A stretch of DNA of 64,000 nt from the NCBI GenBank assembly GCA_965113315.1, contig OZ220368.1; one strand, written 5' to 3'. Both the position numbers and the translations under genes were made by a program. Source of the DNA: Podarcis vaucheri (taxonomy: Eukaryota). Shown piece by piece: positions 20,021 through 40,340 of the stretch (the stretch's first letter is position 1; each line of letters starts with the position of its first letter). The notes under the pieces were generated by a model. That model was not told the DNA's origin, searched no databases, and worked only from the letters and a program-made list of their open reading frames with translations.

Positions 20021-22061
20021 ATAATGCTTTTCTCCACCCCACCCCACCCCCCCCCGCTAATATAAGCACTTCTATGCATACTTCACCTCAGTACATTCAT
20101 TTTTGTGCACATTATTTGTCTGGAGAATCTCACTGCAAAACTTGTAGAAGTGCAGGTTTCAAAGGATAGCTGTGTGCAGGATCAGCAGTGTGAGGAGGGC
20201 TCATGGCTCATGCAATTTGTGATGCAGCCCCCATCTGCACTATACATTTAAAGCAGCATCATACCTCTTTAAACAACATTCCTGAAAGAATTCTGGGAAG
20301 TATAGTTTGTTAAAGGGGCCAAGAGTTGCTAGGAGATTCCTGTTCTTACAGAGTTCCAACACTCAGAGTCCCTTGGGAAGAGGGATTGGTGGTTAAACTA
20401 CTCTGAAAACTGTAACTCTTTGAGGGGAATAGTGTTGGTGAAAACAAATGTCAGGGCCCTGACCAAACTTCAGTTCCCAGAATTCTTTGGGGGAAGGCGT
20501 GAATTCAGTTCCCAGAATTTGGAAGAAGTGGTACGATACTGCTTTCAATGCTTAGTGCAGATGGTACCTCAATTTTATTTTGAGGCCAGTGAGATTCACA
20601 CACCACAGTTCATTGCTCCATTTGGCCTGGTTGATCTCAAGCTGTACAGGGCTAGTTTATCTGCATTTTTAATCCATTAAAAAAAAAAGCTAGCATTTTG
20701 TTTGGGAATTATGTAATGCCAAATGGCTTGTTGCTCTTTTTGTTAGCGCATATTTTCCATTTAATAATTTAAAACACAATATCCAGCCCTTTGTCATAAT
20801 ACCAGGGCAGCATTTATGCAAACCTCCAGCTGGATGCATATTTATTGGCACCTTTGAATATACAGAGTTTACATTCCAGCTCTGTTTTATGCTTGCTTTC
20901 TCTTCCTCTCTGGTACATTGATGGTCGTGGGGCCATTATTGTTTCAAGTTATAAAATATGGATATCACTACCATGAATATTAGATCTCAATATATGGCCT
21001 TCTGAGGCAATTTGAACTGTATAAAACAATGTTTAAATACAGCTAACAGTGAAGAACTTTAAAAACGTGCACAGTAAGAACAAAAGGGCCGAGCAAATCA
21101 TGCAACAATGGACAAAATCAGGCAGTAGCAATAATGGAAAATGCTGAAACCATGGGGATGTCTCAATAGTATAGAGAACCGGGTATACTGTCATGGGACA
21201 GGAATCAGCTTCACCTGCAGAACAGCAGCCTGAAGAGAGAGGGAGTGATTCCACCTGCAGCTGATCAGCCTTCAAGGACACAGAGGAGAAGACACTGATG
21301 AGAACCAGCTGGCTTCAGCCTTCTCAAGCAGAGCCAAATGCTGGAAACACTGCTAGTAGTTCCTGGCTCTACCTTGCAGCTTCCTGCTCATCTTGACCCT
21401 GGACCCCATAATTATTGGATTCCTTGACCCTTGGACCATGTGGATTGCTGTTTGCCTTGGACTGGACCTAACTTTGGATGCTGATGCTGCCTCCAGGCAA
21501 GTACACCTCAGAGACTCTTCTGGTTGGCTGGTCTCCCACTCCACTGAGCTCATTGAATGAATGCACAGAGGCAATTATAGGTCCATCCCCCAATGAATGT
21601 GATGTTCACTGAAAAGAGTTGTTTGCATGTATGGATAGAAAGCTCCCACATGCAAGGAACAACCCCTGACTCCATTTAGCCCTGACGGAAGGTTTCCCAA
21701 CAGGGGAAGAGGTGTCCCCTGAAGCTGCCTGCACAAGAACCCATTTAGCCTGGGCTAGTAGGAAGGGTTGTGCCATGGGGACGTTACATGATTTCCAGCT
21801 TGGTCTGGATGTACACACAATAGGCTAGGCACTTCTCAGTTGCATGTACAACACATCACACGATAGGGCTGTTTACATATTACACTCAACAGATGTACAA
21901 TCGGCGTACCCGTGTACATAAGAAGTTGACCTGTACATTTGTACAGTTGTTTACACGTAGATATTTTTACTACGCAGCAACAGACCTGCTCCAAGCAGCT
22001 GTAAAATGTTAAAAGAAAGAAATATGCCACCTCAGACTTCCTTGTAGCTACATTTTTATTT

Positions 22062-22478
22062 GCGTGCTGAAGTCCCACAAAGCCCCTTCCCCAATAACTC
22101 AGACATCACACATAATTTTTGTTTGGTTTTTGGCATAATTTTGGCCACAACTTTATTTTATATACAGATTGAGAGTGGTTGCTTAGGCATTGGTTATGAC
22201 TACGTCCCCCCCCCGCCTTGGGGGACAGCACTGACTCCTTAGCCAGTCCCGGAGGAAACATGGTCAGAGTCAGATGGAGCTGCGTCACAGACTCTCACTG
22301 CTCCGCGCATGTTCCTTGAAGCTTACACGGCCCACACCCTGCCGTCAGGGTTTGGACGAGGGGGATGGTAAGCTTCAGAATTCCTTTAACGGAATACCCG
22401 TCTCAGCAGCATTGGAGGGGCAGGCACAGCCAATCCATACCCCTCCACCAACCAATTTTAACCAATGCCTAACCGCCA
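22062..22478 (-). repeat. Split direct repeat B2 (3' terminal)
   Basis: Matches 22863-23280 except a C9/C10 run and one A/G change (22334 vs 23136); AATAAA on the minus strand at 22152-22157. Confidence 0.96.
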
Positions 22479-22644
22479 ACCTTACAAGTTGTGACGATTT
22501 GCTAAGCAGTAGGCAAAACCCAAAAGGCACGCACTAATCAGCCAATTGGACAAATTCCTACTGGGCCCCCGCACCAAGGCGAACGACCCCATGACAGGCA
22601 AAGCAAGGTCAAAGCGCAAGCCCAAACAAGGGAGGGCGGGCGGG

Positions 22645-22862
22645 AGATCCGATGTCCACAGCAAAAGAGAAAGAGAAAGCTGTGGACCCTGCTTATATAA
22701 GGGGACTAAACCCACCCCTAAATTGGCAACATCAATTTTGCCCCAGTAACAGCTTTAACCAATCTGCTCCATCCCATTGCCCTCAATGGGCTGGTCACTA
22801 ACTGGGGGCTTTGTTTGGCCCCATCCGCAACACGTGCTCTCTCTTCTATGAGAACACGCTTT
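22645..22862 (-). repeat. Split direct repeat A2 (internal)
   Basis: Identical by eye to 29623-29840. Confidence 0.96.
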
Positions 22863-23280
22863 GCGTGCTGAAGTCCCACAAAGCCCCTTCCCCAATAACT
22901 CAGACATCACACATAATTTTTGTTTGGTTTTTGGCATAATTTTGGCCACAACTTTATTTTATATACAGATTGAGAGTGGTTGCTTAGGCATTGGTTATGA
23001 CTACGTCCCCCCCCCCGCCTTGGGGGACAGCACTGACTCCTTAGCCAGTCCCGGAGGAAACATGGTCAGAGTCAGATGGAGCTGCGTCACAGACTCTCAC
23101 TGCTCCGCGCATGTTCCTTGAAGCTTACACGGCCCGCACCCTGCCGTCAGGGTTTGGACGAGGGGGATGGTAAGCTTCAGAATTCCTTTAACGGAATACC
23201 CGTCTCAGCAGCATTGGAGGGGCAGGCACAGCCAATCCATACCCCTCCACCAACCAATTTTAACCAATGCCTAACCGCCA
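22863..23280 (-). repeat. Split direct repeat B1 (internal)
   Basis: Copy of B2; directly abuts A2 through the TTT core. Confidence 0.96.
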
Positions 23281-23309
23281 TTCGAGCCCTTACGCTCGCC
23301 GCCAACCAC

Positions 23310-23900
23310 TCACAAATTAAACCACACCCTCAGCCTGGACACTAGATCATCCAGCCACACATCATTCCCCAATGGCGAGAGATGAACCCCATCATCCCTG
23401 TAAAACTCAGTCGCCTTGAATGAAATCAGAGGGTGAGGAATTACAGCCCCACCCAGATTCACCACCAGCCTGCTTGCTGCGGAATTAATCCGCTTCCTTA
23501 CACGTTCCGTGGCGACTGGGCAAGGACTACCCCGCCAGATGCGGCGTTGCAACAGCTGTGACCAAATTAGCTTAGTTGACGGCACCCGTGCCGCCAATTC
23601 CCCAAGGTCCTGTAATATGGTAGCACGCAGCTCGTAGCAGGAAGAGGAAACCATATCGTTCTCCCCGAGCTGCACCACGATCGCTGAAGGAGGGCCACAT
23701 TGGAAGACACGCCTTCGCATGAGAGGTAACAATTCCCTCCACAGCATCCCCCTTCTGGAAATCCAGGACACCTGAACGCGGCGCGGGAATCCCAGGCCGT
23801 CACCCAGTCCGGACTGGCGAGCTCTGTCTGCAGCCCAGTGCACAATACTGTGCCCTACTATCCAAATACAGATAGCAGCCCGACCTAGGGTAAAACACAC
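23310..23900 (-). CDS. SGNH/GDSL-family hydrolase (esterase) of the Ngaro element
   Basis: Block I IWIVGHS (Ser), block II RGM (Gly), block III VQLGEND (Asn), block V DDGVHLS (Asp/His). The listed start is GTG and the first in-frame ATG lies after the catalytic Ser; probable exon start at 23884. Confidence 0.88.
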   Translation of the reverse strand: MCFTLGRAAICIWIVGHSIVHWAADRARQSGLGDGLGFPRRVQVSWISRRGMLWRELLPLMRRRVFQCGPPSAIVVQLGENDMVSSSCYELRATILQDLGELAARVPSTKLIWSQLLQRRIWRGSPCPVATERVRKRINSAASRLVVNLGGAVIPHPLISFKATEFYRDDGVHLSPLGNDVWLDDLVSRLRVWFNL

Positions 23901-23921
23901 ATATGTAAGTACAACAACACA

Positions 23922-24892
23922 TTATTTCCTCACGTAGGTTCTGAATGCATCCGAACGCCACCGACCCAGGTCCTTTATCCTCTTAACTGACAAACCCCAG
24001 TGAGCGGCAGTTGTAGCCGCCCCAATCCTAAACGAGTGAGGGGCAAACTCAGAAGCCGGGAGGCCGCAAGCCTCCACAGCTTTTCGCAACACTCCCGCAA
24101 ACTGGTGTCTCACCAGCGGGCGGCCATTTTCGTGTATGAACAGGGGCCCTTCGCCACCAGGGCGCAGGGCTAAATACTTCTTAAGGTCCTTCACCGGGCA
24201 ATGGCCACCTTCGCCCGTCGCAGGAAGTGTAATGACAGCGCCCCTACCTAGTTGATCCGTCTTTGAATTCCTGACGTGAACCTGCAGGTCCCTTGAAGAC
24301 ACACTCACATCCTGCATCAACAAACCCCTGGAACCTCCGTCCTGCTTGGGCTCGAGGACCACTTCGCCAACCCTCAGGGCCCCAAAGAAAGTTAACGAAA
24401 AGGCTGCTGAAAATAGCCGAACCTCAAATTTCGACCAACAGATGCTCCGCAGCTTAGACCGCATCTGCGCCAGCAATTCAAATGTAATGGGTCGCCTGGA
24501 GACGGGCCTGGAAGGAGTGAGTCGCCCCCATCCCTCCAGGGCCCTACGCACTACAAACTTCTTACACGGATCTTTATTAAAATATGCTTTACTAAAAAAG
24601 GAAATTGCTGCAGAATGCAGGCGTAGGGTCCTAGCTGCACGACGCATCTGGAATAGATGTGCCAGATACCGGAGCACCTGAGAGGTGGAGTGGGGGGTGG
24701 TAACCTCCCCAGCAGGCTGCCCACTAAATAACAAAAAGTCCGCCCAGGCCTTTTTATAGGACCTCAAGGTAGAAGGTGCCACAGATGCAGCTACTCCCTG
24801 TAAGACTAAGTTCTGCCAAGGTTCCAGAGATGATCCGGGAAAATTTCCGGACGGTCTCGAGCCACTGGCACCAGGGACCTGAAACGCTCCAT
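23922..24892 (-). CDS. Tyrosine recombinase (lambda-integrase family)
   Basis: GALRVGE (Arg), SKTDQ (Lys), HSFRIGAAT (HxxR), GRWRSDAFRTY (Trp, Tyr). The ORF-track start at 24782 is GTG; the frame is open upstream to the candidate acceptor at 24892. Confidence 0.95.
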
Positions 24893-26581
24893 CTGAAAAC
24901 GGGACAGAGCATCAGCAATTTCGTTAGAAATTCCTGGGACAAAACGGGCAGAAAAAACAATGTTAAAACGCAAGCAATGCAAGACGAAGGCCCGAAGAAG
25001 GGCAGATACCCGAGGGGATCGTGAAGACTGCTTGGCCAGTACATTCACCACCGCCTGGTTATCAGTCCAGAAACAAACACGGTGATCCCTAAATTGTTCG
25101 ACCCACAAGTGCACTGCCACTACAATGGGGAAAAACTCAAGAAAGGTTAAGTCCCTGGTTATAGCCTGCCCCCTCCATGCAGGAGGCCAGCGCTCAGCGC
25201 ACCACCTGCCATCCCAGTACAAGCCAAACCCTAAGGACCCCGCAGCATCCGAATGCACTTGGAAGTCGTTGTGGAGGTTCAAAGTGTCCTGCCACAAGGA
25301 CACCCCGTTGAATTCCTCCAAGAATTCCAACCAAATAGCAAGGTCAGCCCGTACCTGAGCAGGAAGGCGGACCCTGTGATGCGGGGCCTGCAGGCCCGAG
25401 GTGAGTCTGGCCAAGCGTGAACAGAAAGGTCGCCCGGGAGCGACCACCCTGCAAGCAAAGTTCAGGTGGCCCAGCAAAGACTGAAGTTGCCGCAGGGAGA
25501 CCTTCTTTAAAGGAATCATCTCTTCGATGACCATTCTTAAATTGGTTATTTTCTCAGGAGGCAGGCTAGATGTTTGAGCCACGGTATCTAACAAGATACC
25601 CAGGTAAGTCAGCTTGGTAGAAGGACCCTCGGTCTTCTCAGCCGCTAACGGGACGCCCAGCTCTTTCGTTAAGGAAGCGAAGGCTTGCAATAAGACCACA
25701 CAATCCCCCGTATTGCCTGCAGAGGCGACCAAAAAATCATCAAGATAATGCGTGACACCGCTTAAACCGGTTTTTTCACGTAAAGCCCATTCCAAAAACG
25801 AACTAAAACTCTCAAAGGCCGCACAGGCAACTGAGCAGCCCATGGGCATAGCCTTATCGAAATAAAAACTCCCTTCGAACTGAAATCCCAGCAACCAAAA
25901 ATCATCGGGATGAATAGGAAGCAGCCGAAATGCTGATTCAATGTCGCATTTTGCCAGTAAGGCGCCTGGCCCAAATTTTCGGATCATCTTGATTGCGTGA
26001 TCCAAAGAAGCATACCTCACTGAACAAAGCTCCGGGGGAATCACATCATTTACTGATGTGCCTCTGGGATGTGAAAGATTATGTATTAGGCGAAATTCCC
26101 CCGGGGCTTTTTTGGGAACTATGCCCAAAGGTGAAATATGCAAATTGGGAAATGGAGGGACCGCAAATGGACCGGCCATGCGACGTAAAGCTAGTTCCTT
26201 GCCAATTTTTCTTCGTGCCACCTCTGGCATATCCCTAATCGATTTCTGGTTGGCTGGGTTTCTGGCAACCGGGGTAGAGACCACCGGGATTCTAAAACCT
26301 AAAGAAAAACCTTCGCGCAAATAAGACGCCGCCTTGGCATCGGGGTACAACTCCAACAAAGAAAGCAGCGGCTGTAGCCTTACCGGGGTGTAAGCTAAAG
26401 AGGAAATCAAGCTACTTCCCTGCTCCCCCGGCAGGGGCTTGGGCTGCGGTTTTTGGGGGCTGTTGAGAGCCCCCCCCTTTTCGAAAGGGGCGGCGGCCAG
26501 TCTGGCACGCGGACCCGGAATGGTTCCCTGAACACTTATCACACGCATGTGCGTATTTACAAGACTGCCGTGTGCAAGCAC
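24806..26581 (-). CDS. Reverse transcriptase / RNase H
   Basis: SPLGIVPKK, FRLIHNLS, KCDIESAF, MPMG and HYLDDF RT motifs; SDAAG, LEFFPI, TDN and ADALSR RNase H motifs. Overlaps the gag end in the +1 frame; the listed start is GTG. Confidence 0.96.
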   Translation of the reverse strand: MLAHGSLVNTHMRVISVQGTIPGPRARLAAAPFEKGGALNSPQKPQPKPLPGEQGSSLISSLAYTPVRLQPLLSLLELYPDAKAASYLREGFSLGFRIPVVSTPVARNPANQKSIRDMPEVARRKIGKELALRRMAGPFAVPPFPNLHISPLGIVPKKAPGEFRLIHNLSHPRGTSVNDVIPPELCSVRYASLDHAIKMIRKFGPGALLAKCDIESAFRLLPIHPDDFWLLGFQFEGSFYFDKAMPMGCSVACAAFESFSSFLEWALREKTGLSGVTHYLDDFLVASAGNTGDCVVLLQAFASLTKELGVPLAAEKTEGPSTKLTYLGILLDTVAQTSSLPPEKITNLRMVIEEMIPLKKVSLRQLQSLLGHLNFACRVVAPGRPFCSRLARLTSGLQAPHHRVRLPAQVRADLAIWLEFLEEFNGVSLWQDTLNLHNDFQVHSDAAGSLGFGLYWDGRWCAERWPPAWRGQAITRDLTFLEFFPIVVAVHLWVEQFRDHRVCFWTDNQAVVNVLAKQSSRSPRVSALLRAFVLHCLRFNIVFSARFVPGISNEIADALSRFQMERFRSLVPVARDRPEIFPDHLWNLGRT

Positions 26582-27938
26582 CCTTATTGAAATCCCAGCA
26601 AAAAAACTTTTTTCCCAACCTGGTAGGGGCAGCCTTAAACTTCTGGGAGTCAGGGGCCTTCTTCTCTATTCGGGGGGCCACATAAGTGGTCCAGACATCC
26701 AAGTCCTTCCGATCCCAGCGGGCCGTAGGGATCTTAGCCGCCCTACGCCTAAAATTCTGGTCGTAAGCTAGCGCAGCAGTTTCTCCAGCCATTGTGAAGG
26801 TGGAACGGACAATGGACAGATACACCCAAAGATGCAATGATCTCCTGGGGTAGGCTGCGGCCACAACTCCAGCAAAAACCTGAAAACTATCTAGCCAACG
26901 CTCGAAGGTCCTGTCGGCCTTAGCTATGATTGACCGCTTCTTTGGAGCAGGCAGGCCCTTATCCAGAGGCTCCTGACCTTCCAACGGGGGAGCTAAGCTA
27001 AAGATATCAACGTAGCGGCCGTCCAAGATCCTTGAGCGTAATTTGGCGGACAGGTGAGCCCCCGGAATAATGTCCCTGGCCGAGTTGGTAGAGACTTTTA
27101 CATCCGGCACCAGGACCCCTTCAAGGCAGTCTAACACTGCCCCATATCTGGCCCTATGGGAGTTCGCCCTCCGCTCCCAAACCCATTTTGGAAGCCCCGA
27201 GGCTTCCCCAAAACCCCAGTATAACTTAAGGTGCGCTTCCTCATCGCTACTCGAACTCTGGGATGACTCACCTGATGAAGAGGACGAGGTGTCCCTACGC
27301 CTCTTCTTGGCACGCCTCCTTGAACTTCTCTTATGGCGGCGATGACCACCTGAGGACGTCTTCGGAGGGAGAGGGAGGCTATCCTCGACCGACGATTCTG
27401 ATGCGTCACCCTGCTGCGAAGTGGCTGGAAGTGACTGAAAAGACACAACCTGTGAATGACCAGGAATCGCTCTGCCTGCAACTGCGGGCTGCGCAGGCCA
27501 ACCCCGCACAACAAGGCCCCGTGCAGGTGCCCTTCTCCTAGCCCCCGCCCGGGCAGAGACCCGACCCCGTGGCACGGCCACCTGCGACACAGGCGGCACC
27601 GAGGACTGAGCCTGTGGCACGTCAGGCAAGTAGCCACTGGCTGGCACTGGCTCTTCCTCTTCTTCACTGGATGAAGACGGTGGAAGCGGAGCATCCACAG
27701 GGGGAGCCAGCATAGCAGAAGAAGTTGACGGGGTCGAGTGGCGATGCATCAGGCCATCCAGCTCCGCCTCCATCCTTGCCAGAGACACCGGGTCACCAGC
27801 CAAACTAGAGACCCTGGATTGGACTCGTTGTAAAGACTGGCCAGGTTGAGGAGAACGCAGAGCCTGAGATGGGCCTTTTATGGGCCGCTTAGCAGAGAGG
27901 GGAGGGGCCGACTTCCTTGTCGCCTTTTTTGGAGCCAT
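26412..27938 (-). CDS. Gag-like ORF1 (508 aa)
   Basis: ATG at 27938 in good Kozak context (GCAGGCATGG); low-complexity basic N-half with NLS-like RRHKRSSRRRAKKRRR; C-terminal C-x7-C-x4-C-x3-H followed by C-x2-C-x3-H-x4-C zinc fingers. Confidence 0.9.
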   Translation of the reverse strand: MAPKKATRKSAPPLSAKRPIKGPSQALRSPQPGQSLQRVQSRVSSLAGDPVSLARMEAELDGLMHRHSTPSTSSAMLAPPVDAPLPPSSSSEEEEEPVPASGYLPDVPQAQSSVPPVSQVAVPRGRVSARAGARRRAPARGLVVRGWPAQPAVAGRAIPGHSQVVSFQSLPATSQQGDASESSVEDSLPLPPKTSSGGHRRHKRSSRRRAKKRRRDTSSSSSGESSQSSSSDEEAHLKLYWGFGEASGLPKWVWERRANSHRARYGAVLDCLEGVLVPDVKVSTNSARDIIPGAHLSAKLRSRILDGRYVDIFSLAPPLEGQEPLDKGLPAPKKRSIIAKADRTFERWLDSFQVFAGVVAAAYPRRSLHLWVYLSIVRSTFTMAGETAALAYDQNFRRRAAKIPTARWDRKDLDVWTTYVAPRIEKKAPDSQKFKAAPTRLGKKFFCWDFNKGACTRQSCKYAHACDKCSGNHSGSACQTGRRPFRKGGGSQQPPKTAAQAPAGGAGK

Positions 27939-28619
27939 GCCTGCTACTGGCTTTGGACAGAAAATCAAATAAGAGGAAATAAAACAAATGAAATTAAGTC
28001 AAAATTAAATAGAATTAAATAATAATACAATAAAATAATACAATACAAATTAACGAATTTTAATAAAATAATAAACAACCAGCAGGCAGGAGAATAACCC
28101 CAACGCCCCAAGCGTATTCAGAGGCTTAGTCAGTGGTATAAGCAACAGGGATTAACAGGCAAACCTGAACAGGTAAAATTCAACAACCCCTGCAATACCA
28201 GATTGGCCACTAGAGGCCACTGCGGTGCGCAGCTAACACGAGCAGGCCCTGCAGTTACCAGATCCGGCCAGCAGGGGCCTCTATTAGTGAAACGGGGCAA
28301 GATGGCGCTCCCGCCAAAATTGCCCCCCGCAATTGGGGGATCACAAGTGAGGCTGGGCCAGGAACCAGGGATCGATTCAGCAGGAGCCCCCCAAGCGCCG
28401 ATGAGGAGGCCCAGCGGCGCAGGTAAGGGCTCCGCAGCTCTCACGGCCCCCCGCCGGCACCCCTAGAGGGCCCGCAGGGACGGGAGGGGCGAGAGAGGAG
28501 GGGGAAAGGTGGAAAAACTGCTCCCCCGTTCGGGAGCCGAGAGGCCTCCACGGGCCTCAAAACGAGAAAGGCGGCCCGGGCCGCCCAAGCCTCGGCCGCA
28601 GCAGACCCCCGCGCCACCG

Positions 28620-29150
28620 GAGGCGGCCCGCGGCGCGGCAGGCCTGGCCGGATGGGCACCCCCGGCGGGCCGCGCGCAGCAGCCGCTGCAGCAGCGAGCC
28701 CCGGGAGCCCCTAGGCCCCGATGCCGGGAAGGCGGCCTAGGCCAACGGCGCGGCGCGGCAGGCCCGGCCGGATCCGGCCCAGGCGCGGGCGATCGAGACG
28801 CCCCGGCGGGCCGCGCGCAGCAGCCGCTGCAGCAGCAAGCTCCGGGAGCCCCTAGGCCCCGACGCCCGGAAGGCGGGCCAGGCCGCGCAGGCCCCCTAAC
28901 CGCGCCGAAGCGGGCCGGGGCCGATCGCCGCGCCGCCGGACGCGACCAACGGCGCAGCGCGGCAGGCCCGGCGGGATCTGGCCCAGGCGCGGGCGATCGA
29001 GGCGCCCCGGCGGGCCGCGCGCAGCAGCCGCTGCAGCAGCGAGCTCCGGGAGCCCCTAGGCCCCGACGCTGGGAAGGCGGCCCAGGCCGCGCAGGCCCCC
29101 CAACCGCACCGAAGCGGGCTGGGGCCGATCACCGCGCCGCCGGACGCGTG
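28620..29150. repeat. GC/CpG-rich imperfect tandem repeat in the element's 5' leader
   Basis: Block ccccggcgggccgcgcgcagcagccgctgcagcagc at 28660, 28801 and 29005 (periods 141 and 204 bp). Confidence 0.9.
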
Positions 29151-29622
29151 AAGGCGCCTCCCCGCGGGCCACAGTCAACCGCAGCGGCGGCAGCGAGACC
29201 CAGGGGAACTCAAACGTGAGTAAGGGGGAAGGGGGGAGGGTGGGTAACAGCCGAACCGCAGCCGCCCCGCAGCAGCGGTAGGCCCCGGGAGCGGTAGGCC
29301 GTGGGTCAGTAGGCAGGCTCTAATGGCCAGGGATAGCCGGGCCAGATACAGCAGGGACCCAGCCCCCGCCGGCCAGAGCCTTCCCGGCCCGGACAACGGC
29401 TCGGCCGAGACCGGGCCGTAGCCAGTCGGGACCGGGAGATCACCCCCCCCCCAGGGAGAAGACAGGATAAATTAACAGGGAAGAAAATTAAATTAATAAT
29501 AATAATTCAGAAAAAATTAACTTAACCAATCGCTTGGGGATAAATTGAATTAGGAAGGAAAGAAAGGTAAAGCTAAGATCAATACGACCAAGATTTCTCT
29601 CGCTGTTTCACTCCGGTGTAAA

Positions 29623-29840
29623 AGATCCGATGTCCACAGCAAAAGAGAAAGAGAAAGCTGTGGACCCTGCTTATATAAGGGGACTAAACCCACCCCTAAA
29701 TTGGCAACATCAATTTTGCCCCAGTAACAGCTTTAACCAATCTGCTCCATCCCATTGCCCTCAATGGGCTGGTCACTAACTGGGGGCTTTGTTTGGCCCC
29801 ATCCGCAACACGTGCTCTCTCTTCTATGAGAACACGCTTT
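29623..29840 (-). repeat. Split direct repeat A1 (5' terminal)
   Basis: Identical by eye to 22645-22862. Confidence 0.96.
29645..29745 (-). promoter_or_regulatory. Putative Pol II promoter in repeat A
   Basis: Palindromic CTTATATAAG (29670-29679), upstream CCAAT boxes (~29700-29704 and ~29737-29741) and a pyrimidine-rich stretch 25-30 nt downstream on the minus strand. Confidence 0.6.
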
Positions 29841-31666
29841 GTTTGTAGAGCTATATGGATTTTTATAAAGGATTTTAAAGAATTTTCACTAAAAAGATCC
29901 ACCCACAAATGAAACAAGATGGAGCCTGGCACAGGATGGAAATATGGCAAAACATGTTCTCCTAGTTGTATGTAGTTGCTTAGGCCAATACAAAATGGTG
30001 GCGTGAGGCAGGCCATGTTCATGGCATGGATGGACTTGGATGCTTTAAATGCCCCATTCAGGATCCACTTCAGACTCGACTCTAACCTAAAAAGATCTGG
30101 ACGCCACTGTGACATGGACCCAAAATCTGGAGTTTACCACCACTTGTAGCTACTGCATAGTTTTCTGCTTGGCATCCTGGTTAGTTTTCTAATGAACTTT
30201 GGCAGGTATCAATAACTCCCAGCTTCATAGCCCACTTCCATGGCTAGTCTTTTGGAATTTGCTACCCTTTCAGTTATTGCTCTGAATCAGCTTGTGTTTG
30301 TTGGGTTGCTTTGATTTGAACAAGATCCCTGGTGTCACCTCACAACATGACTTTTTGTTTGCAGATAAGGTTTACAGACTATTCTGTGTCTTGCCTCTTC
30401 AGGTTTATCCTATGATATAGATTTCCCCAATGTCTCGCATTGTGTGTCATATGTAAGAAGATAAAAGGTTTTTGTGTTTCTTCCCCCCAAAATAAAGATG
30501 CTTTAAGTACTCACAGAGGATTGCACGCATCCACCTGAATCTAAAGAGCCAGGTAGTGGTTCTATCCATCAATGGCTTTTGTTTTTTAAAAAAGAGATTC
30601 CTGCAAGCAGTTGGTTGATTGATGAAACTTCGTGTCTCTGTGGAAACTCTGGCAGAAAGTGCACTCTGTTCCTAAGTGGCTTAGAGCTGCCACTGCTGGG
30701 TCTTGTTCTGATAGCTCCAAGGTTGTGATACATATTCAGTAAAGGCTAGGCAACATCTGCCAAGACTGGACCACATCCGTGTCTGCAGTAGAGCAGGGGA
30801 GGGGGGGACCTTTACAGCTCAAGTTTCTGAAGGCTACATGCCACTGGTGAGCAAGGCCAGTGGCAAAAGTGGATTGAGCAAAAAGTGTAGCCTACATTCT
30901 GTTGCGGGTTTCAATACTCACCCGCATACACACATCTTTCCATCCATTTAAACAAGAGGTTCTCTCAAAGTTCAAGAATGTGCAGAAGCACTTGAAGATG
31001 TGGAACAGAGCCACTGAGAAGTGCAGACCTTTCAAGTGTCCCTACTTTCCAGGGACAGTCCCGGATTTACAGAAGCCATCCTGGTTTCTGATTTGATCCT
31101 GGAATGTCCCACTTTTCCTTAGGATGTCCCGATTTTCATCAGAGAAATCTAGGAGAGTATGGTAGGACATCCTATTTTCATGGGAGAAATGTTGGAGGGT
31201 GTGGAGTTATGCGACCCCTGAGCCAAGGAGAAAAGTAACTGTACAACCTTTAGAAGACTTCCGATGGCTCCCCAGTACAGGGAAGTTTTAAAATGTTTAA
31301 TCATGTTGTTTGTATAGGCTGGAAGTTGCCCAGAGTTGCTGGGGCTACCCAGTCAGATGGACGTGGTATAAATGTTGTTGTTGCAGTTTTCAACTGCAGG
31401 GTATGGAAGTGTGTGGAAATTGGGGTATGTGGCCTGGGCTGGGTTACAGAGGACTGGAGGGCCATGTTTTTACCCCCAGACCAAAGGTTTCCCATTCCTG
31501 CGGTAGAAGAAAGTCATGATTAACATTGCATGGTATGATGGCATTTAAACTGATGACATGAATGGTGGGGATAAGGCTGGTTTCCGCTAGGGCTTGTCCC
31601 CTTGAGGAATGCTCTATTATTTCCCATCCATGAATTTTCAGGTTTCATTCCAAAGAAAAAACTGTA

Positions 31667-39552: not shown

Positions 39553-40340
39553 TTGCGTGTTCAGACCCAGAGACCACCCTCCTAAATAAAGACACATTTG
39601 ACTCAAATTTTAGTTTTGGTTTTTGGCAGCATTTGGGCCAAAACTTTATTGATTACAGAAAAGTGAGTGGCTGCATAGGCTCTGGTTTGACTAGCTCCCT
39701 ACACCCTTGCAGGTAGCGCTCTATCATAGGTCAGCCAAGAGTGAACACCTGAGGAAGGTGAAAAGCCTGGCAGCAGACTCTATTCACTCCCCAGATGCTC
39801 CCCTGGACTCAGGCACGGGCACAACCCCTTTTTGGGGGTTGGCCAAACCAAGTTGAGTCCCTGGATTCCTTTAACGGAATACCCTTCACATAGGAATGGC
39901 GAGACCGTTATGCCATCCCTATCTCATGAACCAGTGCCTATCCACAACCTTACAAGTTGTTATGAATTGCTACGTGGCAGGCGAAACCCAAATGGCAACA
40001 GCCAATCAGCCAAGTGGGAAAATTCCTCCCATGCCCCTGTCCCAACGACAGATGGCACATGATGGCATAGCAAGGCCAATCACAAAAGGCCCTAAATATA
40101 GGGAGAGGTGGGCGGGTGTTCCGATGCACAAGCCGAAAGAGGAAGCTATGGGTCACGTGCATGGGTTTATATAGGTCCCTTGATCCGTTTAGACTGCAAC
40201 CCCATTGGCCAGATTGAAACCCAGCATGGAGGGACCTACCAATTGGGTGTTGTGGCTATCCAATGAACCCACCCACAACCAAGAGGTCAGTCTCCAGATC
40301 TCACCGCAACACATGTCCTCTTTTAGGGAGGACATGATTT
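39553..40340 (-). mobile_element. Solo A-spacer-B remnant of a related Ngaro family
   Basis: Colinear with 22060-22862: ttgcgtg start, ggtttttggca, aactttatt, attcctttaacggaataccc, aaccttacaagttgt, aatcagccaa, TATA, ccgcaacac and a TTT end. Length ~790 vs ~805 bp. Confidence 0.85.

Follow-up and report, generated by a model that had tools for sequence, protein, structure and literature searches.

How four proteins are expressed from overlapping reading frames, two of which have no usable start codon, is the question raised by a Ngaro retrotransposon in a 64,000-nt stretch of Podarcis vaucheri DNA (assembly GCA_965113315.1, contig OZ220368.1; the whole stretch is called the window here). The element is an intact, recently inserted tyrosine-recombinase (YR) retrotransposon of the DIRS order, located on the minus strand at 29841-22059, and it carries gag, a reverse transcriptase (RT) with RNase H, YR and an SGNH/GDSL hydrolase. 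The initial annotation had proposed that a single donor in gag is spliced to three acceptors, so that RT/RNase H, YR and the hydrolase are all made as fusions to the first 222 residues of Gag. The analyses presented here support this programme for YR and the hydrolase, where gene models of relatives and conserved sites and phases agree with it, and not for RT. The reading in which YR and the hydrolase come from spliced Gag(1-222) fusions, and RT/RNase H more likely from a +1 shift on unspliced RNA, is given a probability of about 75%.

Splice sites and start codons in the window

The open reading frame (ORF) of gag encodes 508 amino acids from the ATG at 27938 to the stop at 26412 (26412-27938, minus strand, as all features of the element below). 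It contains the phase-1 donor CAG|GTGAGT (27266-27274; context TCATCAG|GTGAGT), with the exon end at 27272, and the coding part of the putative shared first exon (27272-27938) thus comprises gag codons 1-222 plus 1 nt. Located 5' of the alternative ORFs, this donor is a strong one. No other site on the sense strand of the element (7.8 kb) agrees with MAG|GTRAGT at 8 or more of 9 positions, the runners-up being six sites at 7/9. The donor codon, Gly223, was almost invariant among 16 lizard Gag proteins.

Downstream, the YR acceptor (24892-24914, ...ctgtcccgttttcag|AT) consists of a pyrimidine tract and CAG|AT, falls within the ADALSRFQ codons of RNase H and has its exon start at 24892. The hydrolase acceptor (23884-23911, ...gtgttttaccctag|GT; exon start 23884) combines a branch-point-like tacttac, a pyrimidine tract and TAG|GT. 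A candidate RT acceptor (26394-26412, ...ttgatttcctctttag|CT; exon start 26394) has a good motif that the comparisons described below do not support. All three exons would begin at codon position 2 of the respective RT, YR and hydrolase frames. The sites at 26394 and 24892 are each preceded by 13 pyrimidines in 17 positions, which ranks both within the best 4% of all 439 AGs in the element. The site at 23884 has 11/17, and no other AG occurs from the YR stop to the catalytic block of the hydrolase. According to a local script that followed the frames and lengths of the products, joining the donor to these acceptors gives proteins of 751 (RT), 545 (YR) and 413 (hydrolase) amino acids. The coordinates, motifs, phases and product lengths of the initial annotation were all reproduced by this recomputation.

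The GTG codons that had been listed as starts of the RT, YR and hydrolase frames proved to be a convention of the ORF lister for open frames. A related argument, that the first ATGs of the three frames are internal, applies to two of them. Translation from the first ATG of YR (24647) would remove its SAM-like domain, and from that of the hydrolase (23747) the catalytic GHS block, while a start at 26548, the first ATG in the RT frame, is 5' of the RT domain and leaves it whole. The YR and hydrolase proteins cannot be made from start codons of their own.

In the proposed mechanism, the full-length transcript would serve both as genomic RNA and as gag mRNA, and a share of the transcripts would be spliced from the single strong phase-1 donor after gag codon 222. 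This donor follows a basic tract resembling a nuclear localization signal and falls in what appears to be an unstructured linker that precedes the Gag core. At least two acceptors would be used: 24892, in the last RNase H codons, or 23884, located 21 nt after tacttac and just 5' of the GHS block. The predicted products are a Gag(1-222)-recombinase of 545 amino acids and a Gag(1-222)-SGNH hydrolase of 413 amino acids; both would start at the gag AUG, which would explain the lack of a usable start codon in the YR and hydrolase ORFs. The N-terminal part of Gag shared by the fusions (Gag-N) begins with the conserved MAPKK...KRPI.GPSQALRSP, is predicted to be helical at residues 32-68 and has a basic tract just 5' of the donor. 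Structure prediction for Gag gave no secondary structure at residues 69-239 and the first strands from residue 240, at a low confidence (predicted local distance difference test score, pLDDT, 39) that allows only a coarse reading of order and disorder. The shared module may direct nuclear import or assembly.

Gene models of relatives and conservation in distant Ngaro loci

A search with Gag residues 1-222 retrieved 26 proteins, and 10 of these were RefSeq models of Podarcis muralis with 412-414 amino acids (one shorter, with 370), in which Gag residues 1 to about 224 are joined directly to the hydrolase from its residue 6 onward. These models are distributed over at least six chromosomes and two annotation releases, and represent families with 41-84% Gag-N identity to the window. 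Lizard junctions were read from the model proteins. The hydrolase fusion junction ...RRRDTSSSSSG|RAAIRIWIVGHS (413-aa model) is the one predicted for the window, and the joins of the gene models read ...SSG|RAAI.... The N-terminal parts of the fusion models match the full-length Gag of the same families. A hydrolase search with no length limit found the same Gag-N-hydrolase architecture in Zootoca, in the geckos Paroedura and Sphaerodactylus, in frogs including Xenopus tropicalis, and in a newt.

The second predicted fusion was also found among the annotated proteins. Model P0324 of P. muralis consists of Gag 1-222 followed by YR, with the junction ...DTSSSST|DGVVQVPG, as compared to ...DTSSSSS|DGAFQVPG predicted for the window. 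Four further Gag-N-YR models (P0305, P0307, P0312 and P0323) are joined, like P0324, exactly at ...|DG.... Models with this junction and a basic or Ser-rich N-terminal part were also present in P. raffonei, Zootoca, a gecko, anoles, an amphisbaenian, frogs and a sea urchin. In Zootoca, the gene LOC118082278 has two isoforms with an identical N-terminus of 207 residues that diverge into either enzyme: isoform 1 (533 aa) continues ...ELEDDS|DGPLPL... into the recombinase, and isoform 2 (397 aa) continues ...ELEDDS|EKLVNIWLFGHS... into the hydrolase. At the level of its proteins, the gene as annotated amounts to a single donor used with two acceptors, and the NCBI pipeline is not known to call alternative isoforms from anything but transcript evidence.

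Two frog models from Ranitomeya (P0266 and P0260) have another arrangement, in which the recombinase is kept as far as ...STWKAY and is then joined straight to the hydrolase. At the level of the predicted proteins, this suggests that amphibian families have an additional donor within YR.

Conservation was examined in 81 distant Ngaro loci with RTs 38-51% identical to that of the window, 80 of them metagenomic and one from a bacterial metagenome-assembled genome (MAG) evidently contaminated by host DNA. At the YR acceptor, the two codons that directly follow the RNase H motif AD.LSR were YYN-CAG in 58 of the 63 dereplicated loci. The Gln codon was CAG in 58 loci and CAA in one, compared to a background of 46% CAG (p = 1e-18), the backgrounds being taken from codon usage across these RT ORFs. 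The codons preceding the acceptor were biased as well, towards TCN and CGN: Ser was encoded by AGY in 2/63 loci against a background of 22% (p = 3e-5), and Arg by AGR in 2/63 against 38% (p = 4e-11). This codon bias is the pattern that would be expected of a pyrimidine tract and an AG-free zone before a used 3' splice site. The YR frame itself opens a median of 8 codons 5' of the conserved CAG.

Similar results were obtained for the phases of the other sites. Acceptor-like YAGs located up to 48 nt upstream of the hydrolase catalytic block were in phases 1, 0 and 2 in 13, 2 and 0 cases, respectively (p = 3e-5). Gag donors scoring at least 8/9 were in phases 1, 0 and 2 in 15, 2 and 0 cases, phase 2 being impossible for a consensus donor because a stop codon would arise; where one gag donor was uniquely best, it was in phase 1 in 14/14 loci. 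Phase-compatible acceptors thus head the YR and hydrolase frames in distant loci, as the initial annotation would have them (YYN-CAG in 58/63 loci; phase 1 in 13/15 hydrolase sites), while at the RT frame neither the AG nor the phase was kept. Taken together, the comparisons of sequence give strong support to splicing at the YR and hydrolase acceptors. For this copy in particular, transcription and splicing are inferred.

Complete animal-type Ngaro pieces with gag, RT, YR and hydrolase were also observed in contigs filed as bacterial MAGs of Sedimenticola and Candidatus Thiodiazotropha (L001, JBEVXV010000599.1; P0076), and most likely are misbinned host DNA.

Reverse transcriptase and the rival explanations

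The RT/RNase H frame (24806-26665) is in +1 relative to gag and overlaps it by 254 nt. The same offset was found in 47 of 61 loci, with a median overlap of about 280 nt, and the frame stays open for about 100 codons 5' of the RT domain, inside gag. The overlap contains a candidate +1 frameshift site at 26470-26489, where gag-frame CCC TTT CGA (TTT CGA at 26486-26481) is followed by AAA and a run of eight G. Gag-frame TTTCG, that is TTT-CGN, occurred within the overlap in 29 of 40 distant loci, with 39 occurrences in the gag frame compared to 1 and 0 in the other two. At this site, the tRNA-Phe could re-pair from UUU to UUC ahead of a slow Arg codon, and translation of unspliced RNA would then yield a Gag-RT fusion of about 1043 amino acids. 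Owing to the base runs, both frames read Pro-Phe at 26470-26489. Slippage on the A4G8 homopolymer was rejected as a conserved feature, runs of six or more being present in some loci only.

The proposal that all three enzymes arise solely from spliced Gag(1-222) fusions, through 26394, 24892 and 23884 and without frameshifting, appears doubtful in its RT part. The site at 26394 is in phase, has its 13/17 pyrimidines just past the gag stop and stands ahead of the conserved AYTPVRLQPL. Two loci of Zootoca, the only ones with Gag-N-RT models, are annotated as 775-aa proteins that use the homologous donor position, and a newt model (P0057, 770 aa) has an N-terminal extension joined close to the RT start. 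However, the join in Zootoca is placed some 13 codons 3' of 26394, and use of the corresponding AG of the window would start the exon at 26371, out of phase. In the lizard family P0006, Met-Ala replaces the Leu-Ala that would provide the AG; in distant loci, the AG at Leu|Ala was found in just 4/9, and the acceptor-like sites 5' of RT showed no phase preference (36, 34 and 16). Moreover, splicing at 26394 would not require the RT frame to be open far into gag. This openness, the unconserved acceptor and the recurring UUU-CGN make translation without frameshifting doubtful for RT, and the sequence data suggest that a +1 frameshift on unspliced RNA is more likely than splicing to 26394, which would give the 751-aa product and may be an extra or alternative route to RT.

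The opposite explanation dispenses with splicing and is considered improbable. It holds that unspliced RNA is recoded throughout, by a +1 shift for RT, a -1 shift for the recombinase and TAA readthrough or reinitiation for the hydrolase, and that splice motifs and gene models are prediction artefacts on a compact element. In agreement with this, the gag-to-RT (+1) and RT-to-YR (-1) offsets are conserved, YR and the hydrolase are in frame across one stop in the window, this stop is retained in a related copy as TGA in place of TAA, YR and the hydrolase form one uninterrupted ORF in some families (P0164, P0292 and P0287), and no spliced contigs were seen in the runs examined. Inspection of the 105-nt RT/YR overlap (24911-24806) nevertheless revealed no canonical -1 slippery heptamer X XXY YYZ, and in distant loci the sequence at the CAG varies (TTT, TTC, TTA, TTG or TCT before CAG) with no common heptamer. 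Stop readthrough was rejected as a general mechanism for the hydrolase: the single in-frame stop holds in the window, and the YR-to-hydrolase offset in 20 distant loci was 0, +1 and -1 in 10, 4 and 6 cases, respectively, a variation that readthrough cannot accommodate. Recoding also leaves the phase bias of hydrolase acceptors and gag donors, and the AG avoidance 5' of the YR acceptor, without a reason, and isoforms with an identical first exon in one gene are not what ab initio prediction is known to produce. A still less probable explanation, which can be given very little weight, is that the matching gene models are domesticated host genes built from Ngaro parts and that the sites in the window are incidental. 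In geckos, SGNH domains related to the hydrolase do occur 4-6 in tandem in very large genes with multiple isoforms, and some models bear host-like names ('mucin-1-like', 'zinc finger protein 638-like'). Against domestication, the fusion models are scattered over many loci, which in one species occupy at least six chromosomes, and come from several diverged families, with N-termini that match full-length Gag of the same families; the window copy has complete split repeats, 98-100% identical, and four open frames; and the same site architecture is present in the 81 element copies from metagenomes.

Several observations weigh against spliced YR and hydrolase fusions combined with a frameshifted RT. 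The gene models are automatic predictions that may have been transferred between loci through alignment of proteins, and they are less independent than their number implies. The CAG of the YR acceptor also supplies the first base of a conserved D/G codon in the YR frame and overlaps conserved RNase H codons; the loci were treated as independent in the tests although they are not phylogenetically independent; and the position of the donor within gag varies among distant families. For the frameshift, the evidence is the motif itself, and the test of codon choice was marginal (Fisher p = 0.08). The RNA data weigh little in either direction. Contigs of X1 and X2, two runs of one organism whose RNA status was guessed, are colinear with a 3-5% diverged copy across the donor and the three acceptors and have no joints, contigs being prone to drop rare isoforms. 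In a single-cell RNA run of a related species, only 42 raw reads fell on the element, with no junctions. Run X3, from another organism, gave scattered fragments, with contig depths of 100-330 over 22797-23387 (B repeat), 62 over 24767-24963 (RNase H end and YR start) and 0-12 elsewhere.

On a wider scale, the Ngaro elements of lizards, amphibians and marine metagenomes, together with the sea-urchin model, may share an old conserved splicing programme that takes the place of protease-processed polyproteins, a proposition for which the balance is even. One phase-1 gag donor would serve the recombinase and hydrolase acceptors, the Gag-N tag with its helical segment and basic tract would act in nuclear import or particle assembly, and the ratio of Gag to enzymes would be set by splicing efficiency instead of recoding.

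Comparison with known systems and structure of the element

The arrangement proposed for the window has counterparts in retroviruses. In avian sarcoma/leukosis virus, the spliced env mRNA begins at the gag AUG and fuses the first six gag codons to env. The likeness lies in a donor inside gag, a downstream protein that borrows the start and N-terminus of gag, and an unspliced RNA that is both genome and gag mRNA. In contrast, the Ngaro element would share 222 codons instead of six, its products would be a recombinase and a hydrolase and not an envelope, and it is a YR retrotransposon without long terminal repeats, protease or integrase. Foamy virus Pol and the accessory genes of complex retroviruses are expressed from alternatively spliced subgenomic mRNAs, where one major 5' donor and several 3' acceptors choose the ORF and, as would be the case here, an enzyme is obtained from a spliced mRNA and not from a Gag-Pol fusion. 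The foamy virus donor, however, is in the leader and adds no Gag residues, and no regulator of the Rev or Tas type was visible in the Ngaro element. Drosophila copia makes a spliced gag mRNA from which pol is removed, with the result that more Gag is produced. Both retrotransposons would set a product ratio by splicing, with the difference that Ngaro splicing would remove the gag core and the upstream ORFs to reach downstream enzymes. For the RT frame, the closest parallel is the programmed +1 frameshift of the Ty1 type, at the heptamer CUU AGG C. The gag/pol overlap is likewise in the +1 frame, and the candidate UUU CGA would allow P-site re-pairing on UUC while a slow Arg codon waits in the A site; the heptamer differs, and the Ngaro candidate was recognized by the frame-specific recurrence of UUU-CGN.

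No description of Ngaro or DIRS splicing was found in the literature, in a search that did not cover the founding Ngaro papers, so that a prior description is possible. In the 2021 paper on hydrolase-bearing Xenopus Ngaro families, the words splicing and intron are absent and overlapping frames are listed (PMC9210276). Gag-donor splicing and enzymes from spliced mRNAs being known in retroviruses, what appears to be new by this comparison is their use by Ngaro for YR and the hydrolase. A splicing programme from the gag donor would be a concrete and testable answer, for two of the four proteins, to the problem of overlapping, start-less ORFs in YR retrotransposons. It predicts the actual products, Gag-N fusions of 545 and 413 amino acids, would account for the many isoforms that are annotated as 'uncharacterized protein' in reptiles and amphibians, and would supply site-and-phase rules for annotating Ngaro elements. 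It would also open the hydrolase to experiment, its native form being predicted to carry a Gag leader of 222 residues. The possible UUU-CGN +1 frameshift, if true, would be a second recoding signal.

The assignment of the element to Ngaro was supported by its repeats and domains. It has the split direct repeats A1-[ORFs]-B1-A2-B2: the A1 terminal repeat at the 5' end (29623-29841) is 100% identical to A2 (22645-22863), and the 3' block (22059-23280) consists of B1 (23280-22860), A2 (22863-22645) and B2 (22478-22059), with 99.5% identity between B1 and B2 in repeat search and self-BLAST. RT/RNase H is accompanied by a tyrosine recombinase in place of a DDE integrase, and a Pfam search of the element proteins found no methyltransferase domain. 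The Pfam matches obtained were RVT_1 (1.4e-13), Phage_integrase with a SAM-like domain, a weak Lipase_GDSL, and a CCCH finger in gag. The RT shares 38-83% identity with Ngaro-type proteins from lizards, amphibians and metagenomic loci, the closest being those of the lacertid lizards Podarcis and Zootoca (80-83%). Published Ngaro elements have the structure A1-[gag, RT/RH, YR, SGNH hydrolase]-B1A2B2, where RH is RNase H, with overlapping ORFs and a hydrolase of no known function (PMC9210276, PMC7192593). The window element shares this layout and the overlapping ORFs; the published accounts treat the ORFs as overlapping frames, instead of which a splicing programme is proposed here for YR and the hydrolase.

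Along its length, Gag is made up of helices (approximately residues 32-68), a stretch without structure that includes the basic tract, the core, which starts at about residue 240, and, close to the C-terminal end, a zinc finger of the CCCH type. The YR frame (23922-24911), without a usable ATG, encodes a SAM-like N-terminal domain and the catalytic domain. It is followed by the optional fourth ORF of Ngaro elements, the SGNH/GDSL hydrolase (23310-23921), whose catalytic GHS block at about 23855-23847 lies 5' of the first ATG at 23747. This gene order, with the hydrolase 3' of YR, recurs in L001 and many further loci, and 1556 homologues of the hydrolase were found at E <= 0.001. YR and the hydrolase share one frame in the window, where the TAA at 23924-23922 is their sole separator. 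In the 3-5% diverged copy of X1 and X2, this stop is TGA (23923 T>C, plus strand), and in family P0216 Arg is present at its position, in a continuous YR-hydrolase frame.

Two gecko proteins related to the hydrolase, P0147 (Sphaerodactylus townsendi LOC125439779) and P0148 (Paroedura picta LOC143819563), are multi-isoform products of 2,600-3,100 amino acids with 4-6 tandem SGNH domains (E = 3e-120 to the Ngaro hydrolase), and may represent a host gene that arose from the hydrolase of the element or was its ancestor.

The 1.9-kb leader between A1 and gag contains, at 28582-29130, at least three GC-rich tandem units of about 204 nt (repeat family D1 and self-BLAST), which are 61-94% alike among themselves, and an 'ORF' of 236 amino acids on the plus strand at 28509-29219 is derived from these repeats. 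Self-BLAST found no further copies of the element within the window. The region at 39606-40145 is 74-80% similar to the B/A repeat region at 22114-22673 and could be either a solo repeat or the relic of a different Ngaro family.

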